A stretch of DNA of 62,741 nt, filler included, from Klebsormidium nitens (lineage: Eukaryota > Plantae > Klebsormidiophyceae), in the NCBI GenBank assembly GCA_000708835.1. It is 6 parts of 6 records of this genome, joined end to end, with 100 filler letters (N's around TTAATTAATTAA, not from the genome) between each part and the next. Parts side by side here need not be neighbours in the genome. Positions count along the whole stretch, not along the records: positions 58,054 to 62,741 come from DF238481.1; 5 more parts are not named here. The stretch is one strand, 5' to 3'. Of this stretch, positions 1,170 through 62,741 are shown piece by piece. The position numbers and the translations under genes are program-made. The notes beneath the pieces are model-generated. The model had not been told where the DNA came from, did no database searches, and saw only the letters and a list, made by a program, of their open reading frames with translations. Position 1 is the first letter of the stretch, and every line of letters starts with the position of its first letter.

Positions 1170-2843
1170 ATGGGAGAATCGCTGACAGAGACACAGCAGA
1201 CACAACTAACTGAACTCCTAGACAGCTTTAAGGACATCTTTGCTTTCAATATGCAAGAGATGACTACCATTCCTGGAGTGGAAGTCGAAATTCCAGTCAG
1301 CAACGAGACACCAATATTCAAACATCAGTACCGGTTAGCGCAGTCAGAAAAAGAAGACTTGGCGTAGCAAGTGGCAGAACGCCTCAAGAATGGCCTCATC
1401 AGACCATCAACTTCACAATGGGCCTCCCCCATTACTATGCAACCAAAGAAGGACGAAAACGGAGATTGGACGCAGCGCAGAGCTTGCGGAGACCACCGTG
1501 GCCTTAACCGAGTAAGTGTCACTGACCACTACCAGATACCAACACCAGAAGAAATATTCGACGTCATAGGCGATGCTAAAGTCTTCACTACTTTAGATTT
1601 TCGGCAAGGTTACAATCAGATACGGATCGCAGAAAATGATCGCTGCAAGACCGCATTCTGGGGAGCAGATGGGTTATACGAATGGTTGGTTATGCCATTT
1701 GGGTTGGAAAATGCACCAGCATTCTTTCAGAAGGTCATGCCAGACCAAACCCTCCGTGCCGAAAGGGCTTTTTGCCGCTGCTACATTGATGACTTAATTG
1801 TGTTTAGCAGAACTTTCGAAGAACACCTCAACCACCTGAAACAAGTGTTTCAACGACTCAGAGATAGAGGAGTCAAATGCCATCCTAAGAAGATGCGCGC
1901 CGCCGTACCCGACGTAGGATATCTGGGACACCTAATCGTCCCCGAAGGAACCGCAGTGCAGGAGAAGAAGGTGGAAGCAATCTTAAGAATCCCACCCCCT
2001 CCAGATGTAAGCGCACTAAGAGCCTTCCTAGGAAATGCCGGATACTATCGGAAGTTCGTAAAGAATTACAGTAAAATAGCACACCCACTAAATCACTTGC
2101 TACAGGAAGGAATATCATATGACTGGACGACTGAGTGCCAAACAGCGTTTGATACGCTAAAGACGCACCTAACAGAAGCACCCATCCTTCGCAGGCCCGA
2201 CTTCAACCGCGAGTTCGGATTGCACACCGACTGGAGTGCACAAGGGCTTGGTGCAGTACTCACCCAGCGGGATGATGAAGACAACGAGTACGTCGTTGCC
2301 TATGCCAGTCGCAGTTGTAACAAAACGGAACGCAACTACTCCAGCTACCACGGTGAGTGCCTAGCTGCGGTCTGGGCTGTTTCCCACTTCAAGTATTACT
2401 TGTACGGCCGCAAGTTTACTCTGATTACAGACCATGAACCGTTGGAATGGTTAATGACCAATGAGAAGCTACGGGGAATGCACGCCAGGTGGGCTAACAT
2501 TCTTCAAGAGTATGACATCTACATCAAACACAGGTCTGGCGTTAAAAACCTAGATGCAGATGGATTGTCTCGCAATCCGCTTCCGTCAGAGGTAGATTCT
2601 ACCGGTGCCAGAATGGACCACGTCCAACCGAACGAATCGAGTAAAAATCGCACCTCAGAGCGATCCAGTGCCACTAGAAGTCAGAAAGACACTGAAGCTT
2701 CGAATAGCCTGCTGACTATTCAGAAGGAGGGGATTGCTAACGAGAGCAAGCCGCCCTCAGTTGACTCGCCCAGTGTAATAGCCACAATGCTAGCTAGAAC
2801 TGTTAGTCAACAATGGACTGCTAAGTCGACTGAAAGCAGCTAG
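1170..2843 (+). pseudogene. Reverse transcriptase + RNase H (Ty3/Gypsy pol), one internal TAG at 1365-1367
   Basis: IRPSTSQWASP, LDFRQGYNQI, VMPFGLENAPAFFQ and YIDD for RT. TDWS..GLGAVL, VAYASRSCNKTERNYS and TDHEPL for RNase H. Confidence 0.95.
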
Positions 2844-3223
2844 GGACGACCAATCCAGAGCGAAGTCTATCCTTTCCATCATGCAAGTCGACATGTGCAT
2901 GCAGGCTCAAAGAGCAGAGGCCTGAACCCGGGAACAACAAGCCAAGTTGACTCCTATATTGTGCTGAGACTGTCGACGGGGGACCTGCCGACTACAGGAC
3001 ACGTCATGAAGCAAAAGGCATGCGCTTCAAGGCAACTTCGCCCTAGGGTAAGTGCTGACACCTCAACCATAACCCATGCCAATCAACCGCACGAAGCACA
3101 AGATCCCCGAACCGCCCAGGATCTTCATGTCACTCAGGAATTGCGATTCCCTCTGGCGAATCTTCCGCGCAAGCTCCTCTACAAGTCAATTCTGCCTCAG
3201 ACCAATCCCAACCAGAATTAGAC

Positions 3224-4792
3224 TTGGTAACTAAGTCAGTTGCCGGCGTCACGGGCACAGACGCAACCGACTCTCACTTCCAGGGGACAGATAAAGATGG
3301 CGACCTCCTAGGTGACGACCCGGAGATGGCCCCCATCCCTGATATCTGGTCTGATCACAACACAATACAATATCTGCAGGATAATTGTGTCTACCCAAGC
3401 CACTGCGCCAGCCCCAAGGAACGGGACCGAATACGGCGAAGAGCACAGAGCTACTACAAGTTTGAAAACCATGCTCTCATGAAGCTGACCAATGATGGTA
3501 TCTTAAAACGAGTACCGGCGCCCGAAGCTAGGGCAGCCTTAGTAGCCGACATACATCGGCAACTAGGTCATTTCGGTGTAAGAAGAACTTACTCCCTCTT
3601 AGAACCCACACACTGGTGGGTCGGAATGTACGAACAAATCGCGCAGCTAGTAGCTAGCTGTCAAGTGTGCGACCGAGTAAAGACCAGTTTCAACATCAAA
3701 GATTCAGTACTCAAACCTTTGCCGATCATGGGTTTAGGGTACCGGTGGAGTTGCGACCTCGCAGGGCCGCTTCCCCCATCAACAACTGGATATCTCTACA
3801 TTATGGTCATGATAGAACACTTTTCGAAGTGGCTAGAATTAGTTCCACTTCCTGATAACAATTCAGAAGAAACTGCAAAGGCTTTTCTTCAAGTCTGCAC
3901 CCACTGTGGCGCACCTGCCGAAGTACTCACTGACTCTCAGGGACAGGAATTCCAAGGAGAATTTGACACCCTATGTAAAGAACTCTTGATTGATCATCGC
4001 GAAACCTCACGCGATCACCCTCAAGCTGACGGCCTCGTTGAACGCGCTGTTCAAACAACTAAGCGAGCCGTGCGTAAATATGTATTAACACATGCAGTTG
4101 ATACCTGGGATAAGTGGATTCCTTGGATTGCCATGGGATACCGCATGTCAAAGCAAGAATCACTAGGAGACTATTCACCTTACTTCCTAATGTTTGGCAG
4201 ACATCCCGTGGTAGGAGCAACCCTCCGAGAAATGGTCAACACACCGGTTGACCTAGATAGCCCTGACACGTGGAACGAAGTCATAACTGCACGTGCAGAG
4301 GAATTCAAGAAAGCTATACCCATAGCCTTCAACAACTTGCAAGCAGCGCAACACCGAGATACCCTATGGTATGCCAAAACCCGAACTGGCAACTGGAGCC
4401 CTAAAGTCAAACGGTTCGAGGTAGGAGACCTTGTCTACCTGCGTCGCAAGAAAGTAGACACGCTCGACGTAAATGTCGGCCGCATTATTCAGAGAATAAA
4501 AGAGGTCCTGCCCAATGGCGTACTCAGGCTGCAAGGCAGAGACGGCAAAACGGTCAAAGATCACGTTGAGAACTGTGCTCCGTGTCACAACCCAGCCATA
4601 GACCTCACAATGGACACTACACTTTTCGGATACGATGAGGACTGGGCCTGTCAAATTTGCAAAAAGACAAACCGACCTGCCAAAATGCTTATATGCGACT
4701 ACTGTAGCGAAGGCTACCACATGGACTGTCTGGACCCACCCATCTTGAGAATTCCGAAAGGAGATTGGTTTTGCCCACGATGCGCTTTATAA
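3224..4792 (+). CDS. Retroviral-type integrase (HHCC Zn finger + DDE core) with C-terminal PHD finger
   Basis: HRQLGH...CQVC, then DLAGP, TDSQG and VERAVQT for the DDE core. CQIC..CDYC..GYHMDC..WFCPRC (C4HC3 PHD) at about 4649-4783. Confidence 0.93.
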   Translation: MVTKSVAGVTGTDATDSHFQGTDKDGDLLGDDPEMAPIPDIWSDHNTIQYLQDNCVYPSHCASPKERDRIRRRAQSYYKFENHALMKLTNDGILKRVPAPEARAALVADIHRQLGHFGVRRTYSLLEPTHWWVGMYEQIAQLVASCQVCDRVKTSFNIKDSVLKPLPIMGLGYRWSCDLAGPLPPSTTGYLYIMVMIEHFSKWLELVPLPDNNSEETAKAFLQVCTHCGAPAEVLTDSQGQEFQGEFDTLCKELLIDHRETSRDHPQADGLVERAVQTTKRAVRKYVLTHAVDTWDKWIPWIAMGYRMSKQESLGDYSPYFLMFGRHPVVGATLREMVNTPVDLDSPDTWNEVITARAEEFKKAIPIAFNNLQAAQHRDTLWYAKTRTGNWSPKVKRFEVGDLVYLRRKKVDTLDVNVGRIIQRIKEVLPNGVLRLQGRDGKTVKDHVENCAPCHNPAIDLTMDTTLFGYDEDWACQICKKTNRPAKMLICDYCSEGYHMDCLDPPILRIPKGDWFCPRCAL

Positions 4793-4801
4793 TTTCAAAG
4801 C

Positions 4802-4812
4802 AAGAAAGGGGG
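4802..4812 (+). promoter_or_regulatory. Possible polypurine tract of the Gypsy element
   Basis: AAGAAAGGGGG lies about 10 nt after the integrase stop. It is not followed by a canonical TG LTR start, so the call is uncertain. Confidence 0.35.
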
Positions 4813-4936
4813 CAACGTTTTAACTATGCTTTCACTTATGCAGGAAGCATGGCGTCCAGCTCAACACAACCATCAGGGTTAAAACAAGTTCAGGGTTCAG
4901 GTTGGGGCCCACCCCCAACTCCTGGTCTGGAAGATC

Positions 4937-5556
4937 NNNNNNNNNNNNNNNNNNNNNNNNNNNNNNNNNNNNNNNNNNNNNNNNNNNNNNNNNNNNNNNN
5001 NNNNNNNNNNNNNNNNNNNNNNNNNNNNNNNNNNNNNNNNNNNNNNNNNNNNNNNNNNNNNNNNNNNNNNNNNNNNNNNNNNNNNNNNNNNNNNNNNNNN
5101 NNNNNNNNNNNNNNNNNNNNNNNNNNNNNNNNNNNNNNNNNNNNNNNNNNNNNNNNNNNNNNNNNNNNNNNNNNNNNNNNNNNNNNNNNNNNNNNNNNNN
5201 NNNNNNNNNNNNNNNNNNNNNNNNNNNNNNNNNNNNNNNNNNNNNNNNNNNNNNNNNNNNNNNNNNNNNNNNNNNNNNNNNNNNNNNNNNNNNNNNNNNN
5301 NNNNNNNNNNNNNNNNNNNNNNNNNNNNNNNNNNNNNNNNNNNNNNNNNNNNNNNNNNNNNNNNNNNNNNNNNNNNNNNNNNNNNNNNNNNNNNNNNNNN
5401 NNNNNNNNNNNNNNNNNNNNNNNNNNNNNNNNNNNNNNNNNNNNNNNNNNNNNNNNNNNNNNNNNNNNNNNNNNNNNNNNNNNNNNNNNNNNNNNNNNNN
5501 NNNNNNNNNNNNNNNNNNNNNNNNNNNNNNNNNNNNNNNNNNNNNNNNNNNNNNNT
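4937..5556. other. Assembly gap (620 N)
   Basis: Run of N. Confidence 0.99.
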
Positions 5557-5895
5557 AATCGAATCAAACAGCTAGTGCATAGCTACCGCACTTGGTATGC
5601 ACTCATTGACCAGATGCACAGGGAATTGCTTGCACTGGAAAAGGACAACGATCTTGATCGCACATCGATCAGCGTGCGCCAGTATTTACTTGCCAAATGG
5701 CCGCGCACTGAGTTCAACGAAGTATTGGAGGAGTGCGCCGCGCAATTTCCCCAGGGAACCATCACCACCAGACGCATGAGTACACCGCGCAGAGACGCAA
5801 TGTTAGAATTCATCGAGCGCCAAGTCGATGTGGGACAAAGTACTCATACCGCGGACTGCACCTATTTCTTCATGCAACGGTACGGCAACATTTAG
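5557..5895 (+). CDS. Hypothetical ORF fragment, 5' end in gap
   Basis: About 112 open codons (NRIKQLVHSYRTWY...MQRYGNI), A-rich like the neighbouring retroelement. No domain recognised. Confidence 0.35.
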   Translation, partial: NRIKQLVHSYRTWYALIDQMHRELLALEKDNDLDRTSISVRQYLLAKWPRTEFNEVLEECAAQFPQGTITTRRMSTPRRDAMLEFIERQVDVGQSTHTADCTYFFMQRYGNI

Positions 5896-6023
5896 GATCA
5901 ATCTGTGAACAGGTAAAACTACGCCCCCGCTCCGTGATCTTGGGTCAGAGCCGATGCCATACTTGTATGGTGGCAAGGAATAACTCTCCACATGTCAATC
6001 TAACACATAGCAACTCACAGGAA

Positions 6024-6123
6024 NNNNNNNNNNNNNNNNNNNNNNNNNNNNNNNNNNNNNNNNNNNNTTAATTAATTAANNNNNNNNNNNNNNNNNNNNN
6101 NNNNNNNNNNNNNNNNNNNNNNN
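6024..6123. other. Assembly gap placeholder (44 N + TTAATTAATTAA + 44 N); same at 16120-16219, 37806-37905, 42948-43047, 57954-58053
   Basis: An identical 100-bp construct occurs five times. The 12-mer places stops in all six frames. Confidence 0.97.
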
Positions 6124-6461
6124 ACAGGCCAGAAAGCATTGCGCAAAGTCGGACTAACGATGTTGAAATAGCCTTTCGATCTTCCACCGTGGCACGCAAT
6201 CCAGCGGTTGAAGTGACAGTGGCTCACAGAGAGTTCCGGGGGGGTCGTTGGATCCAGAAGGCGGCACACATCTGGGGGCGGGCGACCATTCCGTTCCGCT
6301 CTGGCGAGCAGCAAGCCAGGTTAATCAGAACTCAGAACAGCTAGTTAGGCTTAAGCCCTGGTTAAGGTTTGAACTTGAAGTTGCAAGGCAGCCTGGCAAG
6401 CTTCCCTAGCTGCGTCTTTGTTTTGGCATGAGAAGGAGCTCTGACAGGTACCAACCGAAGC

Positions 6462-9400
6462 ATGGCGTCTGGCCCGGTTGAAGCTGCGGGAGCCGCAGCC
6501 TATGATCCAAGAAGTGAGGACGAAGTTTGTGCAACAGATTTGGCAGCCTGGTGTCACAGCCAAGTAACGCCACCTCCAGACTGGAAGGACAAAAAGTCAC
6601 TGCCCCCTTGGATAATCCCTGAAATAAACCCCAAGAAAGGGCCATCAAAAGGTCAGGCTCCTGACCCTAGGTACTGGCCTAACATGAAAAGGGAGTACCC
6701 AAACGCTGTGCAAGCTAGTAGGGGCCAAGATTTTCTGCACCCCAATCACTTCCATCTGGCTGGCAAAGTTGTCTACTTTGTTTTCTGGCAATTCTTCTTT
6801 GGGGAGCTAATCCCCATCATCTGCTGCCCCAAGTGTGAGAGTGCTGACAGGGTCTGTGGTGACGGCTGGTCTCTAGACAAGATGAGGAGAGTGTGTAGTG
6901 CGAACGCGCCCGCTTTCCTATTCAGCAAGGTCTTCCGGTGTGGGAAGGGCAAGAAGGTGGGAGAGGGTTGCCCAGGTGAGTTTGTCATGTACTCTCTTTT
7001 GCACGGTGTCTTGTCGACTTTGCCACATTCTGAAGTATGCATGATAGCGCTGGCCCTGCAGAAACTTACATGTTGGTCGTGTTGGCTTCTCTGATGGTGA
7101 AAATATCATTGGCATGTTGACACAGTTTTCTGTCTTGCTTTGTAGCTGCACATTGCAGTGTCAATATTGTCCTGACAATCACAAAGCTTCAAAGTTTGCC
7201 ATCTGATTTGCAAGCACAACTATGAATATCTGCATCCGTTCTGCTGAAGTGGCAATCTGCTTCTCATGTGGTTGCTCGTCTTGCAGCAAATGGTGGCAAG
7301 GCCTACCAGTTCCGCTCTCATGATGAGGGCGTGCTGGACCAGATTCGGCGCAAGCAACCAGCTGTCTTGGAGCAGCTCGCAATCGTTTTCACCCGAGGGG
7401 GAGCTATCGAGCGCAGTCTTCTTGACACCATGGTTCGCAATGTTGTAAGCGGGGCGTCTCTGGCCGATCAGCAAAAGATGGTGCGCGAGGCGCACATGCG
7501 CACTTTTGTCCAGCACAAAGCCACATACATCCAGTACGCTGCAGCAAGAGTCAAACTCCGACAGCAGCAGAGCGGGGCACTTCTTTTCCCCGGAGTTGCT
7601 CAGCCAACCCCTCCGGCCCCTGCTGATTTTGGAGAGTATGGGGACAGGGCGGGATACCGGGGCTGGATTCCTTCAACGTCCTGGCTAGCAGGTTAGTCAA
7701 AACAAGTTGGGGAAGCTTGTACCTACATCGACTTGGAACGTGCGGCGCGCTCCAGAGCGTCGCAAGTTGAGCGCACCTGAAGCATGTTGCTATATGTTGC
7801 TGCCGTTGTTGCAACAATTCCTGTTGTCAAAAACCTAGGTTGCAAGGACTTCATTTGTAGGCAACTTCTTATGAGCACTGATTGGATTCTGCAGACTTTT
7901 TGGGACCACGCTGTGACTTGTTTGAGCATTTAACAAGAGTCCAACGGGCAATCAAACATTCTGGACAATTTCTTCCAGTCACTATTCGGTCAAATGGTTT
8001 GGTTGAACCTGGAACCTGAAAAAAGAACGCTGATCAGATTATCTGTTACAGTTTGGCATGGGCACCCTTTGGCTTGCTGCTGGTCTCTAAGTAATGTGCA
8101 CTCCCAAGTCAGCTTTTCGAACCTGCAAATCTGGGTGCCTAGCAATGTGAGGTGATCTGTTACTGCAAGCCCAACCTCATATGGGCTTTTCTCTAATACA
8201 GGTGTCATCCTTGCGTCCCTCACTGGGCGGCTTGCGTTTCTTGAGCGCCACCTCGCTGCGGTGGATGGGGTTTTCTGGCGGGGAGATCATACCTTCCAAG
8301 CAGCCTCTCGAATTCGATCAGCTGACGGGCGCAAAGACTATGCAGCCATCTACTCGGTGATGAACGAGTGGTCGCAGATCGTCGGGCAGTGGGCTGTGGG
8401 GGACACCTCATTTGACGAGTATGCTGTGGGCCTGCGGGATGTCCTCAAACGTTACGATGACCATGGGTTTCAGGTGCGCTCAATATCACCCTTTAAGAAG
8501 AATGCTTGAATTGGGCGGGTCTGTCTTGTTCGCGACAACTCTTGAAAGGCTGATGCGTTGAAGCAGTGCTCCTTTTGATGTACATACGAGAATCATGCTG
8601 AGTACCTATTTCATTCCCTGCCAAGTTAGGCCGTAGTACTCTGAAGAACGAGAGGTGCAACGGAAGAACAGAGCACCAAAACCTGCCCAATATGCCCTGA
8701 GGAACTTTATATTGGTGTTATCCTACGCACGTCTCTAGATCTTGCCACTTTGCCAAGTTTGTTTTACTGGATTCAGTCATTCTGGTCACAGCTGCCCAAG
8801 TTCATGTGGGTCGACAACTCCCGAACGGTCGCCGCCCAGCTGTACGGTGCCATACCCAGTCTCAGCTGGGTTCTGGAAGATGCCACCCACGTCATGCGTC
8901 GGGTTTTTGAGACCATTCCGGATGCCCACTCTCTCAAAGGTAGGAGTATCGTGTCAGCTTGTTGTTGGGCAATGGTTCAAGTGCTGAGGACGCATGCAAA
9001 ACCCCCTCACTTTGATTCGAGTGTGCTTTCCCCTTGTGTTTCTTCTGCTCTTCATGAAGTCTAGACCGAGGGTTATTTGAAGACGGTGGAACCTGCACTG
9101 GCTGGTTGTCAGTACTGACTGTATTGTATGCACTTCCGGATTCAAATTTTGTCTTCGCATCATGTGAAAGCTTTTGCCTTCTTGGGTTGCACGAACACAG
9201 CGCGCAACGCATGTTACTGGAGCCCATTGTGTGAACCAACAGAAGATTGGTCTAACAAAGAGCTTGTTCTTCTTATACAGCTGACTTTTGTCGGGACTAC
9301 TCGGGCGCGATGTTCAAGATCCACCAGCCGGACAAGTGGGCTTTGCGCGAGTTTCTCCTGGAAGGAGGTCCGGGAAGGCGAAAGTGGACACAAGCTGAGG

Positions 9401-13816: not shown

Positions 13817-13952
13817 GCTACTAGTAGCGTGCTCGGCGCGCGTACACGCGCGCGCGCTGAATTCTGAATTACAAGGCCATTTTCGGGGGTCGTTCCGACC
13901 CCCCAGGCCCCGGGGCTTCGCCCCGCAGGACCCCGTGGGGCCGCCTTCGGCG
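13817..13952. repeat. GC-rich palindrome/hairpin cluster
   Basis: GCTACTAGTAGC (13817-13828), GCGCGCGT-AC-ACGCGCGC (13836-13853), GGGGGTCG-TTC-CGACCCCC (13885-13903), CGGGGC-TTC-GCCCCG (13911-13925), CGCC-TTC-GGCG (13942-13952). Confidence 0.8.
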
Positions 13953-14279: not shown

Positions 14280-15575
14280 ATGGCTCCCTTATGGCAGGAG
14301 CTGCCGTTCTTCAGCGTGCTTGTCAGTCTTATGAGCACAATTGCAGCACGCACGCTGGGCCAGCCTCTCCCCTTTGCACGCCGGTCGCATCAGATGGATA
14401 CTGAGGACGATGATAGAGTTTACCTCATTGTTGGATTGTCCTCTTTGGACATTTCGGAGGATCTCCTTCCAATTGAGAAGGATATGACTGGCAAATTCTA
14501 CATCAAGCCTTGCAGCCTGGCCTGGTGGAACTCCTTCTATCAGGATGTTGCGTCAGATGAAGCCAGATGGCATAAGTTGCTAAGGGTGAGCAGAGGAACT
14601 TTCCAAGAGCTAGAAGAGGAACTCAAAGAAGCTCTGGAAACTAACGTTCCCAAGTTTAGCTTCTCGAAGATCCCCAATCGAATCTTGACAGTAGACCGCC
14701 AGCTTGCTATGACTCTCCATCGCTTAGCAACGGGCAATTCTGCATTTACCATCAGTGAGCTCTTTGGTGTAAGCGAGCCTACGCTCTATCTCACAGTTAG
14801 GAAGGTCTGCAGTTCCATTTGGTACAAGCTCAAGCCTCAGCACGTCTTCCTGCCATCAACTCCAGCAGGCATGCAGAAGGTCATAGATGGGTTTGAGGAG
14901 AAAAGGGGGCTGCCAAACTGCTGTGGGGCAATTGATTGCACCCACTTCGTCCTTGAGCTGCCAAACAAGGAGACATCCACATGCTGGTTCGATCGAGACC
15001 ACAACTACAGTATGATCATGCAAGGGCTGGTGGATGCAGACGGAAAGTTTTTAGACGTTTGCATTGGCTGGCCTGGAAGCACAAATGACTCAAGGGTCCT
15101 CAGGAATTCGGAGTTATGCCACAAGATCATCAATCAAGAGTGGCTACAGGGCCCCACTAAAAGGCTACGGGGGTGTGATGTTGGCCAGTACATTGTCGGA
15201 GACTCCGGCTTTCCAGCTTACAGCTGGCTAGTTGTTCCATATCCAGGGGACCATCTTCCTGAAGTCCGCGACCGCTTCAACTACTTCCACTCATCCACGA
15301 GAATTATTGTCGAATGCGCCTTTGGAAGGTTGAAGGGCATTTGGAGGATCCTGTTGCGGAGGATCTACAAGCCAGACATCAAGTTCCTCCCCATTACCAT
15401 TGGGGCCTGCGTTGTGCTGCACAACATGATGCTGCAAAACGGGGACTACGTCAACGAGCGGTTGATCCCTTTGCCTGACGAGCCGGAGCCGGCGGGACCA
15501 AACGGAGGGCGCGGAAACCAAGATGCGGCGAGCGTGAGAGATGCTTTAGCAGAGTATCTCTTTTGGAATTGCTGA
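14280..15575 (+). CDS. PIF/Harbinger DDE nuclease (HARBI1-like) #1
   Basis: GAIDCTH, IVGDSGF, RIIVECAFGRLKGIWRIL and ACVVLHN. Intronless. Likely ATG at 14280. Confidence 0.93.
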   Translation: MAPLWQELPFFSVLVSLMSTIAARTLGQPLPFARRSHQMDTEDDDRVYLIVGLSSLDISEDLLPIEKDMTGKFYIKPCSLAWWNSFYQDVASDEARWHKLLRVSRGTFQELEEELKEALETNVPKFSFSKIPNRILTVDRQLAMTLHRLATGNSAFTISELFGVSEPTLYLTVRKVCSSIWYKLKPQHVFLPSTPAGMQKVIDGFEEKRGLPNCCGAIDCTHFVLELPNKETSTCWFDRDHNYSMIMQGLVDADGKFLDVCIGWPGSTNDSRVLRNSELCHKIINQEWLQGPTKRLRGCDVGQYIVGDSGFPAYSWLVVPYPGDHLPEVRDRFNYFHSSTRIIVECAFGRLKGIWRILLRRIYKPDIKFLPITIGACVVLHNMMLQNGDYVNERLIPLPDEPEPAGPNGGRGNQDAASVRDALAEYLFWNC

Positions 15576-16861: not shown

Positions 16862-18425
16862 GTGCTGCTTCACAGCCTCCTGTTTCCCATTCAGGAGCAG
16901 TCCTCCAGAGCAGTGGGTGTGTTAGACGAAACGACCAGTATGCTTTTGGGCAGCCGCTTGTCGGGGCTCGTGCCCCGCCTCCGAGCAGCGAAGAGGGGTG
17001 TGACCTGCCACCCCTTGAGCAGCGTGCTCGTCGGTTCCCAGCTGGGGAGCAGCCGAAGCAGTGCAGGGCTCGTGGTGCCGGATTGCAGCGGGATCATTGA
17101 GCCAGCATTCCGCTGGCCAGGGAGAGCTGGGCCAACCCCATCTGACAGGTATGCTGTTATTCATGCAGACTGAAGGCAGCTGTTGTGGAAGCAGCTGTTG
17201 CAACCTGGGTCACTCCTAAATTTCATGTGACAAGCATGTGGCGACAGCATATTTGCAGAGCCTTGAGTACTGAATCCTGAAAAACAGCATGAGCATGAGC
17301 ATGCCTTGTGTGGTTTCGACTGGTGGCTACGATTCGCTGTTGTCATGCTTTGCCTTATTGCTGCATTGTTTGCAGGTCTTTGGGGGAGGCAGACATGGCG
17401 CGTCAAGAGTCCGAATCAATCAGGGGCGAATTTCGTGGGTATTCGGCCGAGGTACGAAGTTAAGGGAAAGGCTTTTGTATTTGCTACTGGCTCAGGCGGT
17501 AGCCATGTCAGTGCTCTTTAGACCACACCAGTTGACAGGTTGCTATGGTTGCTGTGTCTTTTTTATTGACGTTGACTATCCTGCCTCTAAAGACACCCAC
17601 TGCCGTCGGCAAAAAGCATGTTTCTCTTGCAGGAGCGATGCAATTATCCCACCGGAGTCTCTTAGGTCACCTTCTGGTTGAAGCCCGAGGTGCCGTTTGC
17701 AAAGTTGGTGTGCCTGGACGCTGCTTTGCAGGGCTTCAACCAGTTCCAGGGCTACAGGCTGAAGGGGTACATCTTCTACCCCGACGTCCGCCTCGTGAGT
17801 GCCTAGACGGCTTTTCAGGCTCATTGATGTATAGGCAGAACCTATTTGCAAGCAGAATTGGCTCTGCAGGTAGTTGTCTTTTTGGTGTTATATACAAGCG
17901 GCGCTTTTCAGATCCTGTAGTAGGGGGTCTGTCGAGATGAAGGCTTTCTCTGCTTGTTGTGTCTCCAACTGTCCTACTGTGGCACGAGTACGTATGTTCT
18001 GACCACTCTGTCTACCTGCAGATGGCAGAGGGGAGCGGTGAGAGCTTCAATGAGCCATGGCCTGTTTTTGCCAAGGCTCTCTCGAAGCACCCGCTTGCCA
18101 AAGTGGATGTTATTGTGGAAGAGAAGGTACGTAGCTTCGAACCGAACTGGGCAGGGACAACCCTAGTCTGGCTTGTTTTGCAGCCTGCTTCAGTCGCTTG
18201 TTGCATGCTCCTGCTCATCAAGGCACGACCAAAACATGCTCACATTGAGCAATTTTCTTTTCTCAGGACGATGCTGAGACGCTTACAAAAGCGCTTGAGC
18301 CTCTTGTGAGACGGATTAGCACCTTTGACAGGACCGGCTCACGGCCAGAGTGGATCGACCCCGCTGTCGAGATGAGCAGAATGCGAAAGAAGCTGCATAG
18401 GCAGAGATTAGACAGCGGAGGCTAA
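16862..18425 (+). pseudogene. Multi-exon hypothetical gene with an in-frame TAG
   Basis: Phase-compatible GT-AG exons give ...SDRSLGEADMARQESESIRGEFRGYSAE|ERCNYPTGVS*VTFWLKPE|GFNQFQGYRLKGYIFYPDVRL|MAEGSGESF...VIVEEK|DDAETL...RLDSGG*. The TAG is at 17663-17665 and the 5' end is unclear. Confidence 0.5.
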
Positions 18426-20059
18426 GAGGTTTCTGCTGAGCTTGCGAGCTGTGCGAGCTGTGCAGGCGACTCTGCGCTTTGCGCCATCTGAAGCTAGTCC
18501 CTCACTCAGCCGACTTCAATCCGTCTGAAACAATGAAGTATCGTGATTGACACTCTGGTCGATCTAGATTCTTCTTTCGTTGCGTGACAGGAACAGTTCG
18601 AGCTTGTTCTTCCTCATTTTCTAGGGCAACGCCTGCTCGATTTCACTTTTTCAGAGTGCCTCATGAAGAGGTGCTTCTGTGAAATATGATCGTAATTTTA
18701 AGTTTGTTGAGGGCCGATGTCACTGTGCGCATATCTCTAAGATAGAGAAGCAGAGATTTCGAGTGGACTTGAAAGATGTCCAATTATTTGAAGCGTCCTC
18801 GTCGACGATCTGGCAACCCACCATGTGTGCATCTACCGGTATAAGCATGTCGTACATATATCAAGACCGCTCTATTCTGGATGTGCCACTGCATGGACCG
18901 GGTACAGTGCCAGGACTCTGGCAGTCGTATTAAGCATGGCACATCAATGTCTAATGGGACTTATATACAGCATCATTGTCATGCTCAACGTACGTACCGT
19001 CAACTTAGATTGCTCTTCTAATGCATGGGCAGGCCTATCATGTGCATTGCATAACCGCTAGCTTGCACTATAAAATTTTGCAGCTCTTCACCAAACAATG
19101 GCATGATAGATAAGTATAGAGAAGGCGTTAAGGCTTCGCATTCATCGGATGCATTAAATGAAGCCGGACTACACAGCTCTGGTTTCCAATTTTCCATAAC
19201 TTGATCCCCTGTGGAGCCTGCCCCATTTTGGGCGGTACTCTGATGTACGACTACTTACGAGTAACGGCAGTGACCGCGCATCTATTTGAACAACCTTCTG
19301 TGTTTTGACACCTGGCCGAGCAAGCATTGTATTCACCTGTGACTGAGCGTCAGAACTGCATGCACAAACATCAATTCTCGGTGGTCCCTGCATCCGAGCA
19401 CCTCTCTAATGTTTGCGGGCCTTTCATCGCAAATTTGACTCTCTAATTTGTGACTCTCATGAGTAACCAAAGAGCTTGAAACTTCCGCAGCAAAGTCGAA
19501 TTGCTGTCCATTCTGCTCAAGAAGCTCTCGATCGTCTCATACCTTCCCGCGTACGATCTCTCTACTCTCGTATTGTCTCCCGTTAAGCTGCGCAGCGCTT
19601 GGCTCCTGCTCGCCTGGGTGCAGCGTCAGGTTGTCCCGGCACCAGACCACATGGCAGCAGAGGCCACGTGTCCTTAGCCAGCGGCGCAGCTCCGAGTCGG
19701 ACAGAGCCTGCGAAATAGAGTGTAGTTGGTGTGGAACATCCCCTCTCAGATTTCAAGGGCAACAAGGAGCTTATCTGATGTAGTGACGTCGGAAAAGGAT
19801 GCGTTTGGATCTTCAGAGCACCAAGATTGCCTTGCAGAGCAAGGTTTCCGCCAACGCTGTCCGACGTGCTTGCAGCTTTTGACTCCAATTTGGGCAGCGA
19901 GTCACGTATTGGGCAAAATACGAGTGCAAAGCAGGGGAGAAACTGATTCCAACCCCCTAAAAACCACCCGGATCGGTGCAAAAGCCCGACCTTCTATTTA
20001 CAACCCCACATCTGAAAGTTCAAGAATTTATGCACCCATCCTCCTCCGTGTTCGAGCAT

Positions 20060-20945
20060 AACGCTGAGGTTTCACCTTCTGCTTGCCCTTCTTCTTCTCG
20101 GGCTCCTTCGTCTTTACAAACGGGAAAAAGAAAGTTCGAATTACATTTCTTACAAACCACAAAATTAGGCAAAACACATTAGAGCACATCACTCCAGCCT
20201 CATCTTCTGCTTGCCCTTCTCCTTCTCCGGCTCCTTTGCGTTGACGAACGGGATAAAGTTCAGCCCCACCCAATTTCGGAAGATTGAGAAAAACCATCCA
20301 AACAAACTGCAAAGAACTTGTACCGAAAGAGCACATTGCTTCAGCCTTGCCTTCTGCTCGCCCTCCTTTTCTGGCTCCTTGGTCTTGACGAACGGGATGA
20401 AATCATGAGGTCTCGGATGGAAAGTAAGGCATGACAAAGCACGAAAGTCGAAAGCGAGGCACAGGTGATACCTTCTGCTTGCCCCTTCTCCTTCTCCGGC
20501 ACCTACTTTTGAACAAACCGGATTGAATTGAACCCCACCAGCGAGACGAAACTTCGAATTATACGTCCTACAAACCGCAAAATAAGACAAAAAAACTTAT
20601 TCAAAATATCGCTCCAGCGTCACCTTCTGCTTGCGCTTCTCCTTCTCGGCCTCCTTTCCCTTGTAGATCGGAACGAAGTTTAGGAGCCTCAAATGGACAA
20701 TAAGGCATGACAAAGCACCGAAACCAGAGAGTGAGGCACAGCTTCTGCCTTCTGCTTGCCCTTCTCCTTCTCCGGCTCCTTCTTGACGAACGGGATGAGA
20801 TCGAGCCCCCACTAAATTTGAGATTTTGATCTTAAACGTCCCCACAAAACGCAAACTCACGCAGAAAAAACTTTTAGAGCACTCGCTCCAGCCTCACCTT
20901 CTGCTTGCCCTTCATCTCCAGCTCCTTCTTCTTGCCGAACGGGAT
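20060..20945 (-). repeat. Seven degenerate tandem copies of the SerRS last-exon end (FIPFVKxKEPEKEKGKQK + GTGAGG donor-like site)
   Basis: The unit caccttctgcttgcccttctccttctccggctcctt...acgaacgggat recurs about every 135 bp with two alternating spacer types. Confidence 0.85.
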
Positions 20946-57065: not shown

Positions 57066-58132
57066 GGAGCGCGCCGGCCTGACGTCAATACTCGGGCAAT
57101 GCAAACGGCGTCGGGCGCTCCCGACAAGAGCGCTGATAGCATGACCCCGGCGACAGGATATCAGATAGGCCAGCTGTGATGCCGTCGGATGAGGTCAGGG
57201 TGCAGGTCTCGAGAATACCCAGAGCAAGCGCGCTTACCACAACTTGTTGGTAAATTATCGTTCTGTGCTCTGGCGACCTTGGGTTGGGGGGTTGAAGGGT
57301 CAGCCCTTGAAATGGGGGGTGGGGTTTGTTGGTATTCATTGGGATCAGCGGCGCTCTCCGGCGCACGTTGGGTCCAGATGAGTTGGACCGACACATTTGT
57401 TAGTGGTAGGCACGTCAAATGCTCCTGATAGATTCAGAATGCAATGCTGAGGCAAGGCAAGGTGATTCCGTGTCTAGATGAAGGCAGCGCGGCCATCCTA
57501 CCCTGTATGTTGATCGAGTCTAGGAAGATAAGTAGAACTAGTTAAGGTCAACACCATGTTGCCAGTGTGTTCAGTAGTCGGTTCTGCCAGAAGGAAGCCA
57601 TTCTGCAGGCCCAGCAGATGTAGGAAAGGTAGAGCAGCAGATGTGGCAAGGTAGTGAGAGGGGATAGACTAGCTTGTCTTTGAGTATGGCCCGCTTCTTG
57701 TAAGGCGGGGCTAGTACATGCAAAACGGATACGTGCAGTGTAATCTAAAGTAGGAAGACCAGAAGGTCTCATGTCCACGCGTTTGACTCAGAATATTCCA
57801 CGATTGTTTGTGCACGTTGCACATACGCATGCGCATAATCTGCAAAGCTTCGCCGCATGTGACTTACCGGCCTAGTGTTTTATAGTAGAATCCATACTTG
57901 ATACAGTCCGATCAGGCCTACCCATGTGGGCTGCTGCGCAATGCGCTGCACACNNNNNNNNNNNNNNNNNNNNNNNNNNNNNNNNNNNNNNNNNNNNTTA
58001 ATTAATTAANNNNNNNNNNNNNNNNNNNNNNNNNNNNNNNNNNNNNNNNNNNNTCCTAGATCTCCTCGAAATTTTCTCTGAATCTGCTCTATATCTTCTC
58101 AAAATCTAAGCGGTCGGGCGGACTCCGGGTCT

Positions 58133-59104
58133 GTGAAACGCATCTTCTCAGCAGGAAGTCGTGAAAACACCTCAGGCAGATTGGAGAAAGAGGAGTATCC
58201 GGTGCCAGACTTTGTCATAAAAAGAGACTTGTTCGTGGGAACATGCATACAACCCCAGAGGAGACCATCTGGTGAAGTGCAGCGCCTGATGGAGACAAGA
58301 GTGTGTCATCTGCAGGGGGCATCCCTAGGAGGCACTTTGTTCGGAAGAACGGCAGGATTTCCTCGGGTACAGAGTGCACTGCCACGGAGAGGAGGTCCTG
58401 TGATGACTGCGTCCAGACCCTTGTCAAAGTTGGTGCGGATAGTCGATCCAGAATCAGGCATTGAGAAGAAGGTCAAATTTCGCAACCAAGCTTCCTTATC
58501 AGATTACTTACGAAACAAGGGCATTGGATCTCTTCGTGAGATAGACTCAGAAGAAGCTCCTTACAGTGATGACTTTGACGACATACTTGATGGTCAAACA
58601 TACCTGTCCGATTCACAGAAACTGGAGAGTACAATTCAACTTGTTCGGCGTGAGCGGACCAATGTCATAAAAGGGGAAGAGGACGAGTTTGCAGAGGCAC
58701 TTGTGAAGCTGTTCAGTCAACGAGGGGTGTCTCTGAGAAACAGACCTGAACTCCGGACTCTTGCACAAAGGGAAGTGGATGCCGTGCTTGTGGGGAACAA
58801 TTGCGTCGTGATTGGATTCTGCTGCACCAAGCTGGACGAAGAAGAACTTCGAGATGCCTTCGACAAAGTCTCCGGAATTCTGAATCAAGCGGTCCTTGGT
58901 GATCCTGATCTGTCTTTCCTGCTGGTCGACAAGGTTTTTGTGACACAGATGGCTTCCTATATCCCACATGAGAAGCTGTCCAAGCTGGAGGAGTCCGCAA
59001 GGAAGAAGACGATCATGCTCGTCAAAAGGAATGGGAACAACTACTCCTTCAGAAGTCCTTCCCCTGTGCAAACGTTCAAGCGGCCAGCAGCACGGATAAT
59101 GTGA
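58133..59104 (+). CDS. Intronless hypothetical protein with a possible degenerate PD-(D/E)xK nuclease-like core
   Basis: EEDEF...REVDAVLVGNNCVVIGFCCTK resembles the E...D-x(8-12)-E-x-K pattern, but the last E/K pair is not conserved. Start codon uncertain. Confidence 0.45.
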   Translation: MKRIFSAGSRENTSGRLEKEEYPVPDFVIKRDLFVGTCIQPQRRPSGEVQRLMETRVCHLQGASLGGTLFGRTAGFPRVQSALPRRGGPVMTASRPLSKLVRIVDPESGIEKKVKFRNQASLSDYLRNKGIGSLREIDSEEAPYSDDFDDILDGQTYLSDSQKLESTIQLVRRERTNVIKGEEDEFAEALVKLFSQRGVSLRNRPELRTLAQREVDAVLVGNNCVVIGFCCTKLDEEELRDAFDKVSGILNQAVLGDPDLSFLLVDKVFVTQMASYIPHEKLSKLEESARKKTIMLVKRNGNNYSFRSPSPVQTFKRPAARIM

Positions 59105-59214
59105 CACAGGTAAGCGTTTCCACCCTCTGAGTGCAAACTAGGAAGCCTAATCAACATTTCCGCAATGTGTTAGCACTTAAAGGAATTGTGCAAAAGAAAG
59201 TAAAAGGGAGCAAG

Positions 59215-60027
59215 ATGGTTTGTTACAGGGATGGAAAGATTTATGTCATCAGAAACACGTTGAATGATTTGCTGTACATAGGAAGTACCACCGTCCCATT
59301 GTGCAAACGGATGACAAGGCATCGTTGTGATAGCAGGAAGGAAAGATGCAATTCTTCAAAATTCTACCAGGCCATCTCAAAGCTTGGTGAAGAACGCTTT
59401 TATATTGAGCTTTTAGAGAGGTGTCCATGTGAAAGTATTGAAGAGTTGAAACGCTATGAAGGACAGATGATTAGAAAGTTTGATACAGTGACGAATGGTT
59501 ACAACTCGGAAATTGCTGGACGTAATTCTGCAGAATGTAAGCAGGATGAAAAGGATAAGCTAAGGGGAAAGTATGAAGAAAGCGGGCGGGCTAAAAAGGC
59601 TGTATACTATCAGAAACATCGAGAGAAAGAACGAGCGAAGCAAAAGGTATGGCGGGAAAGTCATAAGGATCAGATCAAGGAAAAGAGCTTGGAGTACTAT
59701 GCTGCTAACAAAGATCTGATTGCTGAAAAGCAGAAATCTTACTCAGAGGCCAACAAGGAAAGAATTGCTGTCTATCGCAAGTTGTATCGCGAAGCAAACA
59801 GAGACAAGCTAGCCATGTACCGAAAGCAGAGATACCTGGAAAAGAAAGAGCAGCTTAAAGCTGCAAGCAAAGCGAACCATGAGAGGAATCGAGATAAGGT
59901 TCTTTCTAGAAACAAAGAACGGGTCAAGTGTTCAGTTTGTGACAAAGAGTTGACCAGACCATCTTTGCCTCGCCACATGAAAGCAGTACACAAAGACTTG
60001 TCTACAACTCAACAATCTCCTGACTGA
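59215..60027 (+). CDS. GIY-YIG endonuclease with a K/E/Y-rich helical repeat region and a C-terminal C2H2-like finger
   Basis: YRDGKIYVIRN...LYIGSTT..LCKRMTRH, YIELLERCPC...LKRYEG, NGYN, and CSVC..LTRPSLPRHMKAVH. Likely ATG at 59215. Confidence 0.88.
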   Translation: MVCYRDGKIYVIRNTLNDLLYIGSTTVPLCKRMTRHRCDSRKERCNSSKFYQAISKLGEERFYIELLERCPCESIEELKRYEGQMIRKFDTVTNGYNSEIAGRNSAECKQDEKDKLRGKYEESGRAKKAVYYQKHREKERAKQKVWRESHKDQIKEKSLEYYAANKDLIAEKQKSYSEANKERIAVYRKLYREANRDKLAMYRKQRYLEKKEQLKAASKANHERNRDKVLSRNKERVKCSVCDKELTRPSLPRHMKAVHKDLSTTQQSPD

Positions 60028-61255
60028 GTTGAGCAATCTTATTTATGCACTTATCAATCTGCTCACGCAAGTCTTTGATCTGCTGCAGCTTGGTGTTTTT
60101 CTGAGCCTCCTTCGCGGCCAGCTCTTCAGGGCTCGTGCTTATGTTGTAAAAAGCTTGGACGTCCACGCTATTCCCCATTTGATAGGCAAGCTCCTCGCGA
60201 GCTTTGATGCTAGGATTGGTAGCTAGGAATGCAGTGATTTTCAAATGGCGAATTGCATTACATCCGATTGACGCTTTCAGGACTCTTTTGAAGGTATCTG
60301 TGACACACTTAGAGAAGGTACCACTAGTGTAGGGATCTTGATTTGTGTTCTGGAACAGCCACTTTCGTTTATGTTCCATCATGCTTGTTTTTGTGATTTC
60401 AAATAGAACTCCCGTCAATTTCACCTCATACTTGTCATACGTCTTTGCTGTTTTGTAGTTTCCTATGCACATGTCTACATACTTGTTGCGTGTATTAACA
60501 AACATCTTGTTCGGCTCCTCAGAATGGTTGAAATCTGCCTGACTTTTTATGACCTCCATCTGACAGAAATCCTTAAGTCTGCGCGGAGGGATGATACTAT
60601 ACATGGCAACTAAAAGATGGTCTCTGCTTGCAAATTCATCTTTGCGTAATCGCTTCTCGCATTCCAGCACGTCTCTCCATTGAATCGGTTTGCCGTTCAG
60701 CATGATGCTAGCAACCTTCGGCGCATTATCTTTTGCTATCTCTTGTGCCGAACCTGCAGCAGACATCATGGCGTCGTAATATTTCTGTTGCACCGCATCT
60801 GTCACCTGCAGAGTAGTGTGCTTAATCAGCGAGACAAACGCTACCAAATATCCTGTGCGCGAATTCATGTTTGGGTAGCGATTCACTATGTAGTCTATTA
60901 CTTTGTCTGGCTGGTTGATAAGCTTTTGCATGTCGGTAGCCTTCAGGCACTTTGCTATGAAAGAAGTCTTGCGCACGTAGTCAGCCTGTGTGTCGGTTGC
61001 AAGATTCACGTTTGCATCGATCTGTCTCGAAGTATCTGCAACAGTGACAGTCTTTTCTTTGCCTTTACCTTTTGCTGCCCTCTTAGGTTTAGGTGCAGGC
61101 TTCGGAGCAGGTGGTGGTGGTGGAGTGGCAGGTGCGGGTGCGGGTGCTTTGCTTCTCGTCGCTCTACCTACCGCCGCCGCAGCACTCGATGGACCTGGCT
61201 CGTCATCGAGACTGATCACTTTACCAGCATTTCTTGATGTGCGTGTCTTTGCCAT
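60002..61255 (-). CDS. Tyrosine recombinase (viral/PLV type)
   Basis: MYSIIPPRRLKDF (R), NYKTAKTY (K), GCNAIRHLKIT (xxxR), LAYQMGNS and QAFY (catalytic Y). Confidence 0.88.
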   Translation of the reverse strand: MAKTRTSRNAGKVISLDDEPGPSSAAAAVGRATRSKAPAPAPATPPPPPAPKPAPKPKRAAKGKGKEKTVTVADTSRQIDANVNLATDTQADYVRKTSFIAKCLKATDMQKLINQPDKVIDYIVNRYPNMNSRTGYLVAFVSLIKHTTLQVTDAVQQKYYDAMMSAAGSAQEIAKDNAPKVASIMLNGKPIQWRDVLECEKRLRKDEFASRDHLLVAMYSIIPPRRLKDFCQMEVIKSQADFNHSEEPNKMFVNTRNKYVDMCIGNYKTAKTYDKYEVKLTGVLFEITKTSMMEHKRKWLFQNTNQDPYTSGTFSKCVTDTFKRVLKASIGCNAIRHLKITAFLATNPSIKAREELAYQMGNSVDVQAFYNISTSPEELAAKEAQKNTKLQQIKDLREQIDKCINKIAQLSQEIVEL

Positions 61256-61329
61256 CTTTCGTCTTTACTATATGGAAGATATATAAACTTCTGGTTCATT
61301 TCCCGCACAAATTATCTCATTAAAACTAA

Positions 61330-61569
61330 ATGGAACAGACGAAGGATATTTCTATTGACGAATACAAAGCTATGCACGCTTTGTGTTGCAAGTTCTACTA
61401 TAAGAATATTCCTGAGGAAAGAAAAGAGATCATGCGCGAAAGGCAGCGAACTCGGAATCGCGAAAAGTACCATAATGACCCAGATTATAGAGCGAGGGTC
61501 AAGAATTACATGCACAATTACTACGCTAAAAAGAAGGCAGCAGCATCCGCATCAGAGCCAGATGTCTGA
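61330..61569 (+). CDS. Small basic hypothetical protein (virus-like)
   Basis: ATG-started 79-aa ORF with REKYHNDPDYRARVK, divergent from the recombinase. Confidence 0.6.
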   Translation: MEQTKDISIDEYKAMHALCCKFYYKNIPEERKEIMRERQRTRNREKYHNDPDYRARVKNYMHNYYAKKKAAASASEPDV

Positions 61570-61648
61570 AGTGCTCGCGCCAAAAACTTTTAATTTTGTG
61601 ACAAATGAAAACCATTTAAAGAAATGACACCTAATATAAATAGTAAGA

Positions 61649-61981
61649 ATGGACATCGAAACGCTAACCGCTACTATAAAAGCATTTGCGCTGACCCAGA
61701 TTGCTGAACACATGGAGAAAGTCGGACAGAATCTGACTGCGTCAAAGCAAACCAAGAAGTACAAAGAAGATACAGAGTATGCTGAAAAACTTCGGACTGC
61801 TGCTCGCGAGCGTTTTCACAGACTCAACAAGGAAGAACGCGACCAGATTAATAAGCGAAGCAATGAACGCTATAAGACAGACCCTGAGTATCGCGAAAAA
61901 AAGAAACAAAAGGCAAAAGAAAGATCAGCGAAGGTTCGTGAGGAACGCAGGGCAGCAAAGGCAGCCGCTTCCCAGAAGTAA
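61649..61981 (+). CDS. Small basic coiled-coil hypothetical protein (virus-like)
   Basis: ATG-started 110-aa ORF with ERYKTDPEYREKKKQKAKER. Confidence 0.65.
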   Translation: MDIETLTATIKAFALTQIAEHMEKVGQNLTASKQTKKYKEDTEYAEKLRTAARERFHRLNKEERDQINKRSNERYKTDPEYREKKKQKAKERSAKVREERRAAKAAASQK

Positions 61982-62046
61982 TTTACATTCCCTTTTTTGA
62001 CCAAAATGCAAACTACTTAAAGACAATTCATTTTTTCTGTTCACAT

Positions 62047-62741
62047 ATGGATACCCCGGCGGCACTATTTTGTCTCCCGGGCAAGTGTATGCACAACTTT
62101 TGAAAGAAAACCTCTTCTTAAAGACCGGCGCAAAGTCGTTCCGTTACTTTTATTACGCCGGGGGAAACAAAGAAGGTCGGTTCGACTATTTCTTGAAACG
62201 GTTTGGCAGTTCCTCTGATCAGCCCGACTTCGTGGAAGAGTGTGAATGCACTCATTGGATCAAAGAGAATTGCTACGTGGAGTATATGCCCGACGACGTG
62301 CGATGCAAACCACCCAAACTGTTTGTGGTCGGGAATTGCTGCATCTAAAGTTTCTGCCTCGTGACAATCAGGGCAAGACCTGTTCAGACTGCCGTATGCC
62401 GCACAAGAATCGCAAAGACAACTACTGTACCCCCTGCCGCGAAAAGCGCGACGGTCGCCGCTGTAACGAGTGTGGCGAGAAACAAAGGAAGAGTGAGGTA
62501 GGCTACTGTCCCGACTGCCGGGCAGCTTTCGGCCGTCGGATGTTCGAGAATCGGATGAAGGAGATTGCGCAGATTGCCCGCCGTCCGATGGACATTAATG
62601 AGTACATGCCACGGAAAATCGACCGCGACACGAACCCCGACGAGATTGACGTACGTCCGAAGTATGTACCAGAAGCCTCAAATTGTGTTTGGCCAATGGG
62701 CAAGTACAAGGGTAGGTTTGTACACGAGATTGAAGAGAATT
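62047..62741 (+). pseudogene. Cys-rich Zn-finger protein, frameshifted at about 62346, runs off the window
   Basis: CECTHWIKENCYV...VVGNCCI[shift]KFLP...KTCSDCRMPHKNRKDNYCTPCR...CNECG...YCPDCR...WPMGKYKGRFVHEI. Confidence 0.7.

Follow-up and report, generated by a model that had tools for sequence, protein, structure and literature searches.

Elements of the Polinton-like virus (PLV) type are believed to play a double part in protists: they parasitize the genome, and they provide a heritable defence against giant viruses. Klebsormidium, a streptophyte alga that lives on land, stands near the stem of the land plants. PLV insertions span 15-30 kb and encode a primase-helicase or pPolB together with a tyrosine recombinase or an rve integrase, and seven PLV-type major capsid protein (MCP) genes have been found in Klebsormidium nitens (Bellas et al. 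2023, PMC10120064). In the literature that we searched, no paper maps the gene block described here or gives a genome map of a Klebsormidium PLV. We analysed positions 58054-62741 of a window of 62,741 nucleotides of K. nitens DNA (the window being the whole stretch, filler included); this piece is one whole contig of 4,688 bp (DF238481.1). With a probability of roughly 0.8, it is an internal segment, from the integration and early-replication end, of a Polinton-like, virophage-sized element family that is endogenous in Klebsormidium. A sequence-only reading had placed the edge of an endogenous PLV or related virus here; its view of the element as virus-like and of the PLV kind held up, and the edge did not. 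The kind of element is already known, and the piece represents neither a new class nor an element edge.

Compared with PLVs and their endogenous copies in algae (PMC4642659, PMC10120064), the family belongs to the same size class, measuring at least 24 kb here. Like PLVs, it encodes an A32-like packaging ATPase and a GIY-YIG nuclease; a primase-S3 helicase replaces pPolB, and the rve integrase gives way to a tyrosine recombinase. It is likewise present in numerous integrated copies per genome, and streptophyte hosts, K. nitens among them, were already on record. Unlike in known PLVs, sequence comparison with Pfam and the PDB fails to recognise the capsid protein of the lineage, and two very large open reading frames (ORFs; 777 and 1657 aa in the related locus L014) have no family match. 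A further difference lies at the ends: a single terminus was seen, with an 85-bp inverted repeat inside that end, and no pair of terminal inverted repeats (TIRs) was found. Cryptons and DIRS elements share with this family the use of a tyrosine recombinase for integration into eukaryotic genomes. They lack a packaging ATPase and a primase-helicase, however, and DIRS elements carry a reverse transcriptase, whereas the recombinase described here lies amid virus-like genes and has viral proteins as its nearest structural neighbours.

Gene order in related loci

The six genes of the piece (Table 1) recur in related loci, which we designate by L numbers. Positions 60008-62714 are collinear with L001 at 77% nucleotide identity. 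L011 and L012 have the order ORF A, GIY-YIG gene, opposite-strand recombinase gene and two small genes, followed by an AEP primase and a helicase; the zinc-ribbon gene is kept in L012 and has no match in L011. The block runs on into an AEP_C962R primase, PriCT_2 and a D5_N/DUF5906 helicase in L001, L004/L005, L006, L012 and L014. At 2229-3170, L001 additionally encodes a P-loop protein of 314 aa (phrog_2666, E 5.6e-6) in which both Walker motifs, A and B, are present. Its homology to the ATPase encoded on the metagenomic contig L016 extends over its full length (E 8e-16), and the L016 ATPase scores above the Pox_A32 (PF04665) cut-off (25.4 versus 22.8 bits). The A32/FtsK-type packaging ATPase that characterizes PLVs is therefore found in the relatives and not in the piece.

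A search for viral hallmark genes downstream had been suggested as a check of the sequence-only reading. Done in the relatives, it recovered the primase-helicase and the A32-like ATPase, and for the capsid gene a candidate only. The candidate MCP family, A3 (P0172), consists of proteins of 385-435 aa encoded near the ATPase, four K. nitens proteins included, and in the relatives the gene is flanked by small ORFs. A distant member, encoded on L016, lies two genes away from the A32-type ATPase of that contig, which also carries a helicase, and a closer one is encoded in L015 beside a GIY-YIG gene; members in PLV-like metagenomic contigs share 22-36% identity. Capsid_N, the N-terminal domain of giant-virus capsid proteins, was matched below threshold (E 0.04-0.09) by 3 of 24 A3 members, these being distant ones. 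A scan of JGI metagenome contigs with the candidate MCP returned no relatives. From its sequence and its neighbours, we regard A3 as a candidate for the MCP of the element. The two very large ORFs of L014 lie upstream of the candidate capsid gene (1978-4311 and 4348-9321) and have no Pfam match. Parts of both recur, fragmented, in L002.

Pieced together from the relatives, the element would begin with the two very large ORFs, the candidate MCP gene, small genes, the A32-like ATPase and the AEP-PriCT-D5 primase-helicase. It would continue with the zinc-ribbon protein, the two small basic proteins, the opposite-strand recombinase, a variable slot and an inverted-repeat terminus, the slot being occupied in the variant seen here by the GIY-YIG nuclease and ORF A. 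The collinear unit spans at least 24 kb, and its far end was not reached. In such an element, the primase-helicase would replicate the genome, and the ATPase and candidate MCP would serve to package it into a capsid. The recombinase (nucleophile Y370, with R226, K268 and R336) would insert the circularised genome site-specifically near the inverted-repeat terminus, and the nuclease would be a mobile passenger of the variable slot.

The same gene content bears on whether the block might belong to a capsid-less mobile element, either a Crypton-like transposon or a replicon that resembles a transpoviron or a plasmid and is equipped with a primase-helicase of its own. Such an element would fit with a candidate MCP that has no significant match to a known capsid family or solved structure. 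Yet the relatives encode a full-length A32-type packaging ATPase, which would have no obvious role where a capsid is lacking, the candidate MCP family occurs in metagenomic contigs built like PLV genomes, and PLV-type MCPs are on record for K. nitens (PMC10120064). Because the packaging ATPase is present, we consider a capsid-less transposon very improbable. An affiliation with Cryptons or DIRS elements would also imply a recombinase that is the sole enzyme or is joined by RT/RNase H, with no viral genes around it, whereas a primase-helicase flanks the recombinase in all relatives and a packaging ATPase is present.

Algal giant viruses also carry such recombinases, GIY-YIG nucleases, D5 primase-helicases and A32 ATPases, and the block could thus derive from a giant-virus (Nucleocytoviricota) insertion rather than from a small PLV-like element. 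The best structural matches of the recombinase are indeed giant-virus proteins, distant members of its family lie on contigs with TBP-, SET-, DOT1- and TFIIB-like genes, and Gallot-Lavallée and Blanc (2017, PMC5294986) reported core genes of giant viruses (nucleocytoplasmic large DNA viruses, NCLDVs) from Klebsormidium. The alga is also reported to contain phycodnavirus-like inserts. Eight related loci with their 10-kb flanks speak otherwise: a unit recurs in them in collinear form (70-80% identity), it stops at a sharp terminus beyond which the flanks are unrelated, and no PolB, VLTF3 or Pfam-recognisable NCLDV capsid gene was found within 10 kb on either side. Since the repeated unit is small, bounded and without other core genes, a giant-virus insert seems improbable, and a small PLV-like element remains the reading that we prefer.

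The contigs in which copies of the family were found are 79-136 kb long, and one copy has reverse-transcriptase genes as neighbours; the copies diverge from one another by 20-30% and are unequally decayed. Their position in long contigs with differing flanks indicates that the family is integrated; for the copy in the window itself, integration is not demonstrated by the 4.7-kb contig. That contig might instead be non-integrated, having come from a viral genome present in the sample as an episome or in free form, or from an organism that was co-cultured: it is short, has no host flank on either side, and five of its six genes are open. Against this stand the one frameshifted gene, the numerous diverged and partly decayed copies in long contigs, and a near-identical ORF A in the transcriptome of Klebsormidium subtile. 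Repeated copies that break an assembly would, moreover, yield short contigs anyway, and we judge a non-integrated origin unlikely.

In the 113-kb contig L006, reverse-transcriptase genes and a weak Phage_integrase match (17499-19305, 20860-20900) lie a few kilobases past the element end. They may represent a DIRS-like retroelement that adjoins the viral element.

Position of the segment within the element

The edge had been placed at 59131, which would leave ORF A outside the element. ORF A proved to be a conserved gene of the same family. Its product comprises 271 aa from the first Met, with the conserved core beginning at a later Met, and has no match in Pfam, PHROG or the PDB; its relatives in the database number five. 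The homologues P0169 (L011) and P0171 (L012) lie beside GIY-YIG and recombinase genes, as in the window. By this synteny, ORF A belongs to the element and the step in GC content near 59100 is no border; the possibility that ORF A is a host gene was ruled out on the same grounds. A TIR suspected at about 59105-59215 did not materialize either, as that stretch is the intergenic sequence before the GIY-YIG gene and holds no notable repeat. Inverted and direct repeats searched for anywhere in the piece gave only short, chance-level matches. Judged from gene order in the relatives, the piece begins and ends within the element.

ORF A also bears on the host. It is 97% identical to, and collinear with, a K. 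subtile transcript (P0222), so the gene is intronless; a second K. subtile transcript shares 60% identity by BLASTP and 56% in the multiple alignment. Together with the K. nitens homologues of the capsid candidate, the transcript match agrees with the earlier suggestion of a probable charophyte host, namely Klebsormidium. Directly past the ORF A stop, at 59105-59112, stands a splice-donor-like CAG followed by GTAAGC; the coding part has a collinear transcript.

The terminus of the element is visible in the relatives. Three copies are near-identical up to one point and unrelated beyond it (near L004 14389, L012 916 and L002 14429), so that the terminus is discrete and the flanks differ between copies. 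The 0.9 kb before the ORF A homologue of L012 matches, at 93% identity, the sequence with which the L004 element ends; in L004 this sequence follows a different gene set than in L012. The terminal region of L004 includes an 85-bp inverted repeat (13847-13931 and 14288-14372, arms 98% identical, 356-nt spacer), which we regard as a candidate attachment or terminal structure. This terminal region has no counterpart in the piece; the layout of the relatives would put the terminus of the variant seen here ~1.1 kb leftward of ORF A, past the contig end. The view that the recombinase sits near an element end is roughly right, the distance to the terminus being 2.8-3.2 kb in the relatives. Integration into a tRNA gene was considered and discarded, as no tRNA was found in the piece or at the termini of the relatives.

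A sequence of ~100-115 bp occurs twice per element, near the terminus and in the gap beside the helicase gene (L004 13602-13719 and 5785-5900; L001 13107-13205 and ~5470-5568; L012 1592-1697; L014 15498-15605). Its copies in L004 match in both orientations, so the sequence is partly palindromic, and it may serve as an origin or in regulation.

A divergent tyrosine recombinase

As a single query, the 417-aa recombinase had no match in Pfam, PHROGs or PDB sequences, and hence no direct Pfam match by which to assign it; a shallow 11-sequence profile likewise found none, and a first AlphaFold2 (AF2) model from that 11-sequence alignment was poor (predicted local distance difference test score, pLDDT, 56). 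Only a deep, exhaustive profile search resolved the family. Whereas a word search gave 16 close relatives at 55-83% identity, all from metagenome or raw-read assemblies, the exhaustive search gave 1991 relatives at E<=1e-3 and 607 at E<=1e-10. PF00589 is matched by 24 of 99 diverse relatives and the SAM-like N-terminal domain by five, and the family profile matches PDB entries of the integrase 3nkh (E 2e-5), the archaeal XerC-like 4a8e, XerA, Tn1549 Int and XerD.

An AF2 model from the deep alignment reached a pLDDT of 87.7 and a predicted TM-score (pTM) of 0.75. It predicts a two-domain recombinase fold, with a helical core-binding domain and a catalytic domain, and in a Foldseek search against the PDB every top match was a tyrosine recombinase (XerA, Cre, lambda Int) with 310-360 columns aligned. 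Residues 1-66 are predicted to be disordered and rich in Pro, Ala and Lys, and residues 376-416 form a confidently modelled 40-residue helix beyond the nucleophile Y370. Because 24 of the 99 relatives match PF00589, the family profile matches recombinases in the PDB and the predicted fold agrees, we conclude from the model, the family alignment and the profile matches that the 417-aa protein is a tyrosine recombinase.

Across the 99-member alignment, R226, K268 and Y370 are invariant, and Y219, P224, T269, R336, H337 and M360 are nearly so. The four core catalytic residues (R226, K268, R336 and Y370) are thus all in place, and both His positions are substituted. The His-II position, 333, is N, S or T throughout the family (N333-x-x-R336-H337 here), and position 362, a His in 89 of the 99 members, is an Asn (N362) in the clade of the window protein. 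The R-K-xxxR-(G)N-Y residues that had been picked out in the sequence-only reading could accordingly be located at R226, K268, R336, N362 and Y370.

Among predicted viral structures in BFVD, the best matches were to proteins of Tetraselmis virus 1 (7e-14) and Aureococcus anophagefferens virus (AaV; 2e-13), followed by Pyramimonas orientalis virus, Heterosigma akashiwo virus 01, Hokovirus and Harvfovirus; a Qinghai Lake virophage protein matched at E 1e-5. The OLV11-like recombinase family is known from PLVs, Organic Lake-type (OLV-group) virophages, Phaeocystis globosa virus virophage (PgVV) and AaV (Yutin et al. 2015, PMC4642659). With both giant-virus and virophage proteins among its structural neighbours, the predicted structure agrees with the earlier remark that PLVs and some virophages and NCLDVs encode this type of recombinase, and it is consistent with membership in the OLV11-like family common to algal giant viruses, virophages and PLVs. 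The same two domains, core-binding and catalytic, are present as in the OLV11-like recombinases of Organic Lake-type virophages, PgVV and AaV. The R-K-R-Y residues are kept, and the AaV and Qinghai Lake virophage proteins are among the closest structural neighbours, although identity to those proteins is 15-20%. The window protein differs in its disordered basic N-terminus and 40-residue C-terminal helix; N, S or T at position 333 is a feature of the whole family and Asn at 362 of the window clade only.

Distant members of the recombinase family (~27% identity) are found in L007 (a contig of NCBI GCA_013558315.1) and L010 (JGI 3300045972). Both are densely packed with TBP-, SET-, DOT1-, TFIIB- and Clp-protease-like genes and are probably giant-virus genome fragments.

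A GIY-YIG nuclease in a variable slot

The nuclease beside the recombinase matches PF01541 with 31.1 bits against a cut-off of 22.6 (E 2.9e-7) and PHROG homing endonucleases with E 1.5e-17. Its residues 8-98 align with the catalytic domain of I-TevI (1mk0, E 9e-6), with the catalytic Glu position retained. The Pfam match and the I-TevI alignment substantiate the earlier identification of a GIY-YIG gene next to the recombinase. In the C-terminal part, a basic helical repeat region is followed up by a weak match to a C2H2-like zinc finger. The repeats (~125-235) look similar to the two small basic proteins, but the BLASTP comparison between them was not significant.

Divergent GIY-YIG homologues (28-36% identity) occupy the same slot in L006, L011 and L012, and the gene is absent from that slot in L001-L005. 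Given this presence in some relatives and absence in others, the nuclease is most simply read as a homing-type passenger in a variable slot. The comparison with I-TevI extends over ~90 residues of the catalytic domain, in which the GIY and YIG tyrosines, the Arg, the Glu and the Asn are in place, and the patchy presence among related elements is that of a mobile nuclease gene. In contrast to I-TevI-type nucleases, the window nuclease has no intron or intein context, and its DNA-binding part would consist of basic repeats and a C2H2-like finger rather than the zinc finger and helix-turn-helix of I-TevI.

Weight of the evidence

Several observations weigh against an endogenous PLV-like element. 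The piece contains no capsid, penton or ATPase gene, and no host junction either. The capsid assignment in the relatives draws on gene position and sub-threshold Pfam matches and stays that of a candidate; the candidate MCP profile has no PDB match apart from one spurious PPR hit, and PHROGs gave none. The relatives show a single terminus type, so that a TIR pair and the total length are not established. In the recombinase, N362 replaces the usual His, and its activity is therefore an assumption. Finally, no relatives were returned from IMG/VR by the recombinase profile, by the candidate MCP or by the ATPase, and these scans thus provide no evidence of free virions.

We put forward only tentatively, as less probable than not, that the family is a Klebsormidium-specific PLV lineage, recently active, with a capsid unrecognisable by sequence and a recombinase clade marked by the change from His to Asn. 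If so, its nearly intact, transcribed copies would point to an undescribed small-virus/giant-virus system in Klebsormidium-type algae. Mapping has yielded a nearly intact family, one gene of which is transcribed, and with it concrete loci for asking which small viruses accompanied the giant viruses reported from Klebsormidium; the same loci allow one to ask how far the copies have decayed.

Gene layout, small genes and a promoter-like motif

The six genes are intronless and tightly packed, covering ~88% of the piece as coding sequence. Intergenic gaps measure 65-111 nt, and the convergent GIY-YIG and recombinase genes share 26 nt at their 3' ends. The packing and the absence of introns had been recognized before, with a count of five genes that becomes six once the upstream ORF A is included. 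GC content is ~0.50 over ORF A (to ~59100), 0.40-0.46 over the next four genes, and back up to 0.54-0.55 over the last gene, after ~62250. The compositional shift noted earlier is numerically real. Because GC content rises again after ~62250, however, the step near 59100 is gene-to-gene heterogeneity within the element and not a border between host and virus. An Rfam scan of the piece found no families.

Table 1. Genes and promoter-like motif in positions 58054-62741 of the window
Feature	Position	Strand	Evidence
ORF A, conserved element gene	58289..59104	+	Homologues in the same position in L011 and L012
Promoter-like motif YTTAAAG	59176..59182	+	39 nt upstream of the GIY-YIG start
GIY-YIG nuclease, 270 aa	59215..60027	+	PF01541, PHROG and I-TevI matches
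Tyrosine recombinase, 417 aa	60002..61255	-	Family alignment, profile matches, predicted fold
Small basic protein, 79 aa	61330..61569	+	Same place in L001-L006, L011 and L012
Small basic protein, 110 aa, possibly DNA-binding	61649..61981	+	Relatives at 63-77% identity; phrog_19880
Cysteine-rich, zinc-ribbon-like gene, frameshifted, cut by the contig end	62047..62741	+	Intact homologues in relatives

Reading frames are open in five of the six genes, and the recombinase is full length against its best relative (417 versus 420 aa). As had been noted, the recombinase and nuclease frames are intact. Decay is slight; judged by its reading frames, the copy is nearly intact, with one gene frameshifted. 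The frameshifted gene is the last one, as comparison with intact homologues (292 aa in L001, 259 aa in L014, and 190 aa) made clear. Its match to these homologues is split across two reading frames, and in the nucleotide alignment with the closest homologue, L014, two gaps have lengths that are not multiples of three. We read these as one certain and one probable frameshift. The gene is also short of ~30 codons at the contig end. Its two open pieces, searched separately, gave weak double-zinc-ribbon matches.

For the 110-aa protein, the phrog_19880 match is to a 'transcriptional regulator' (E 8.8e-6). The 79-aa and 110-aa proteins have one short motif in common (BLASTP E 8e-4).

The motif YTTAAAG occurs at five plus-strand sites in the piece, against 0.77 expected. 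Besides the copy before the GIY-YIG gene, one at 61615-61621 lies 34 nt upstream of the start of the 110-aa gene and one at 62016-62022 lies 31 nt upstream of the start of the last gene; the others are at 59854 and 62117. In the relatives, the motif stands 22-37 nt upstream of 5 of 53 genes, primase genes included, where ~0.7 would be expected. From this spacing, YTTAAAG is a possible, putative promoter element of the replication module.

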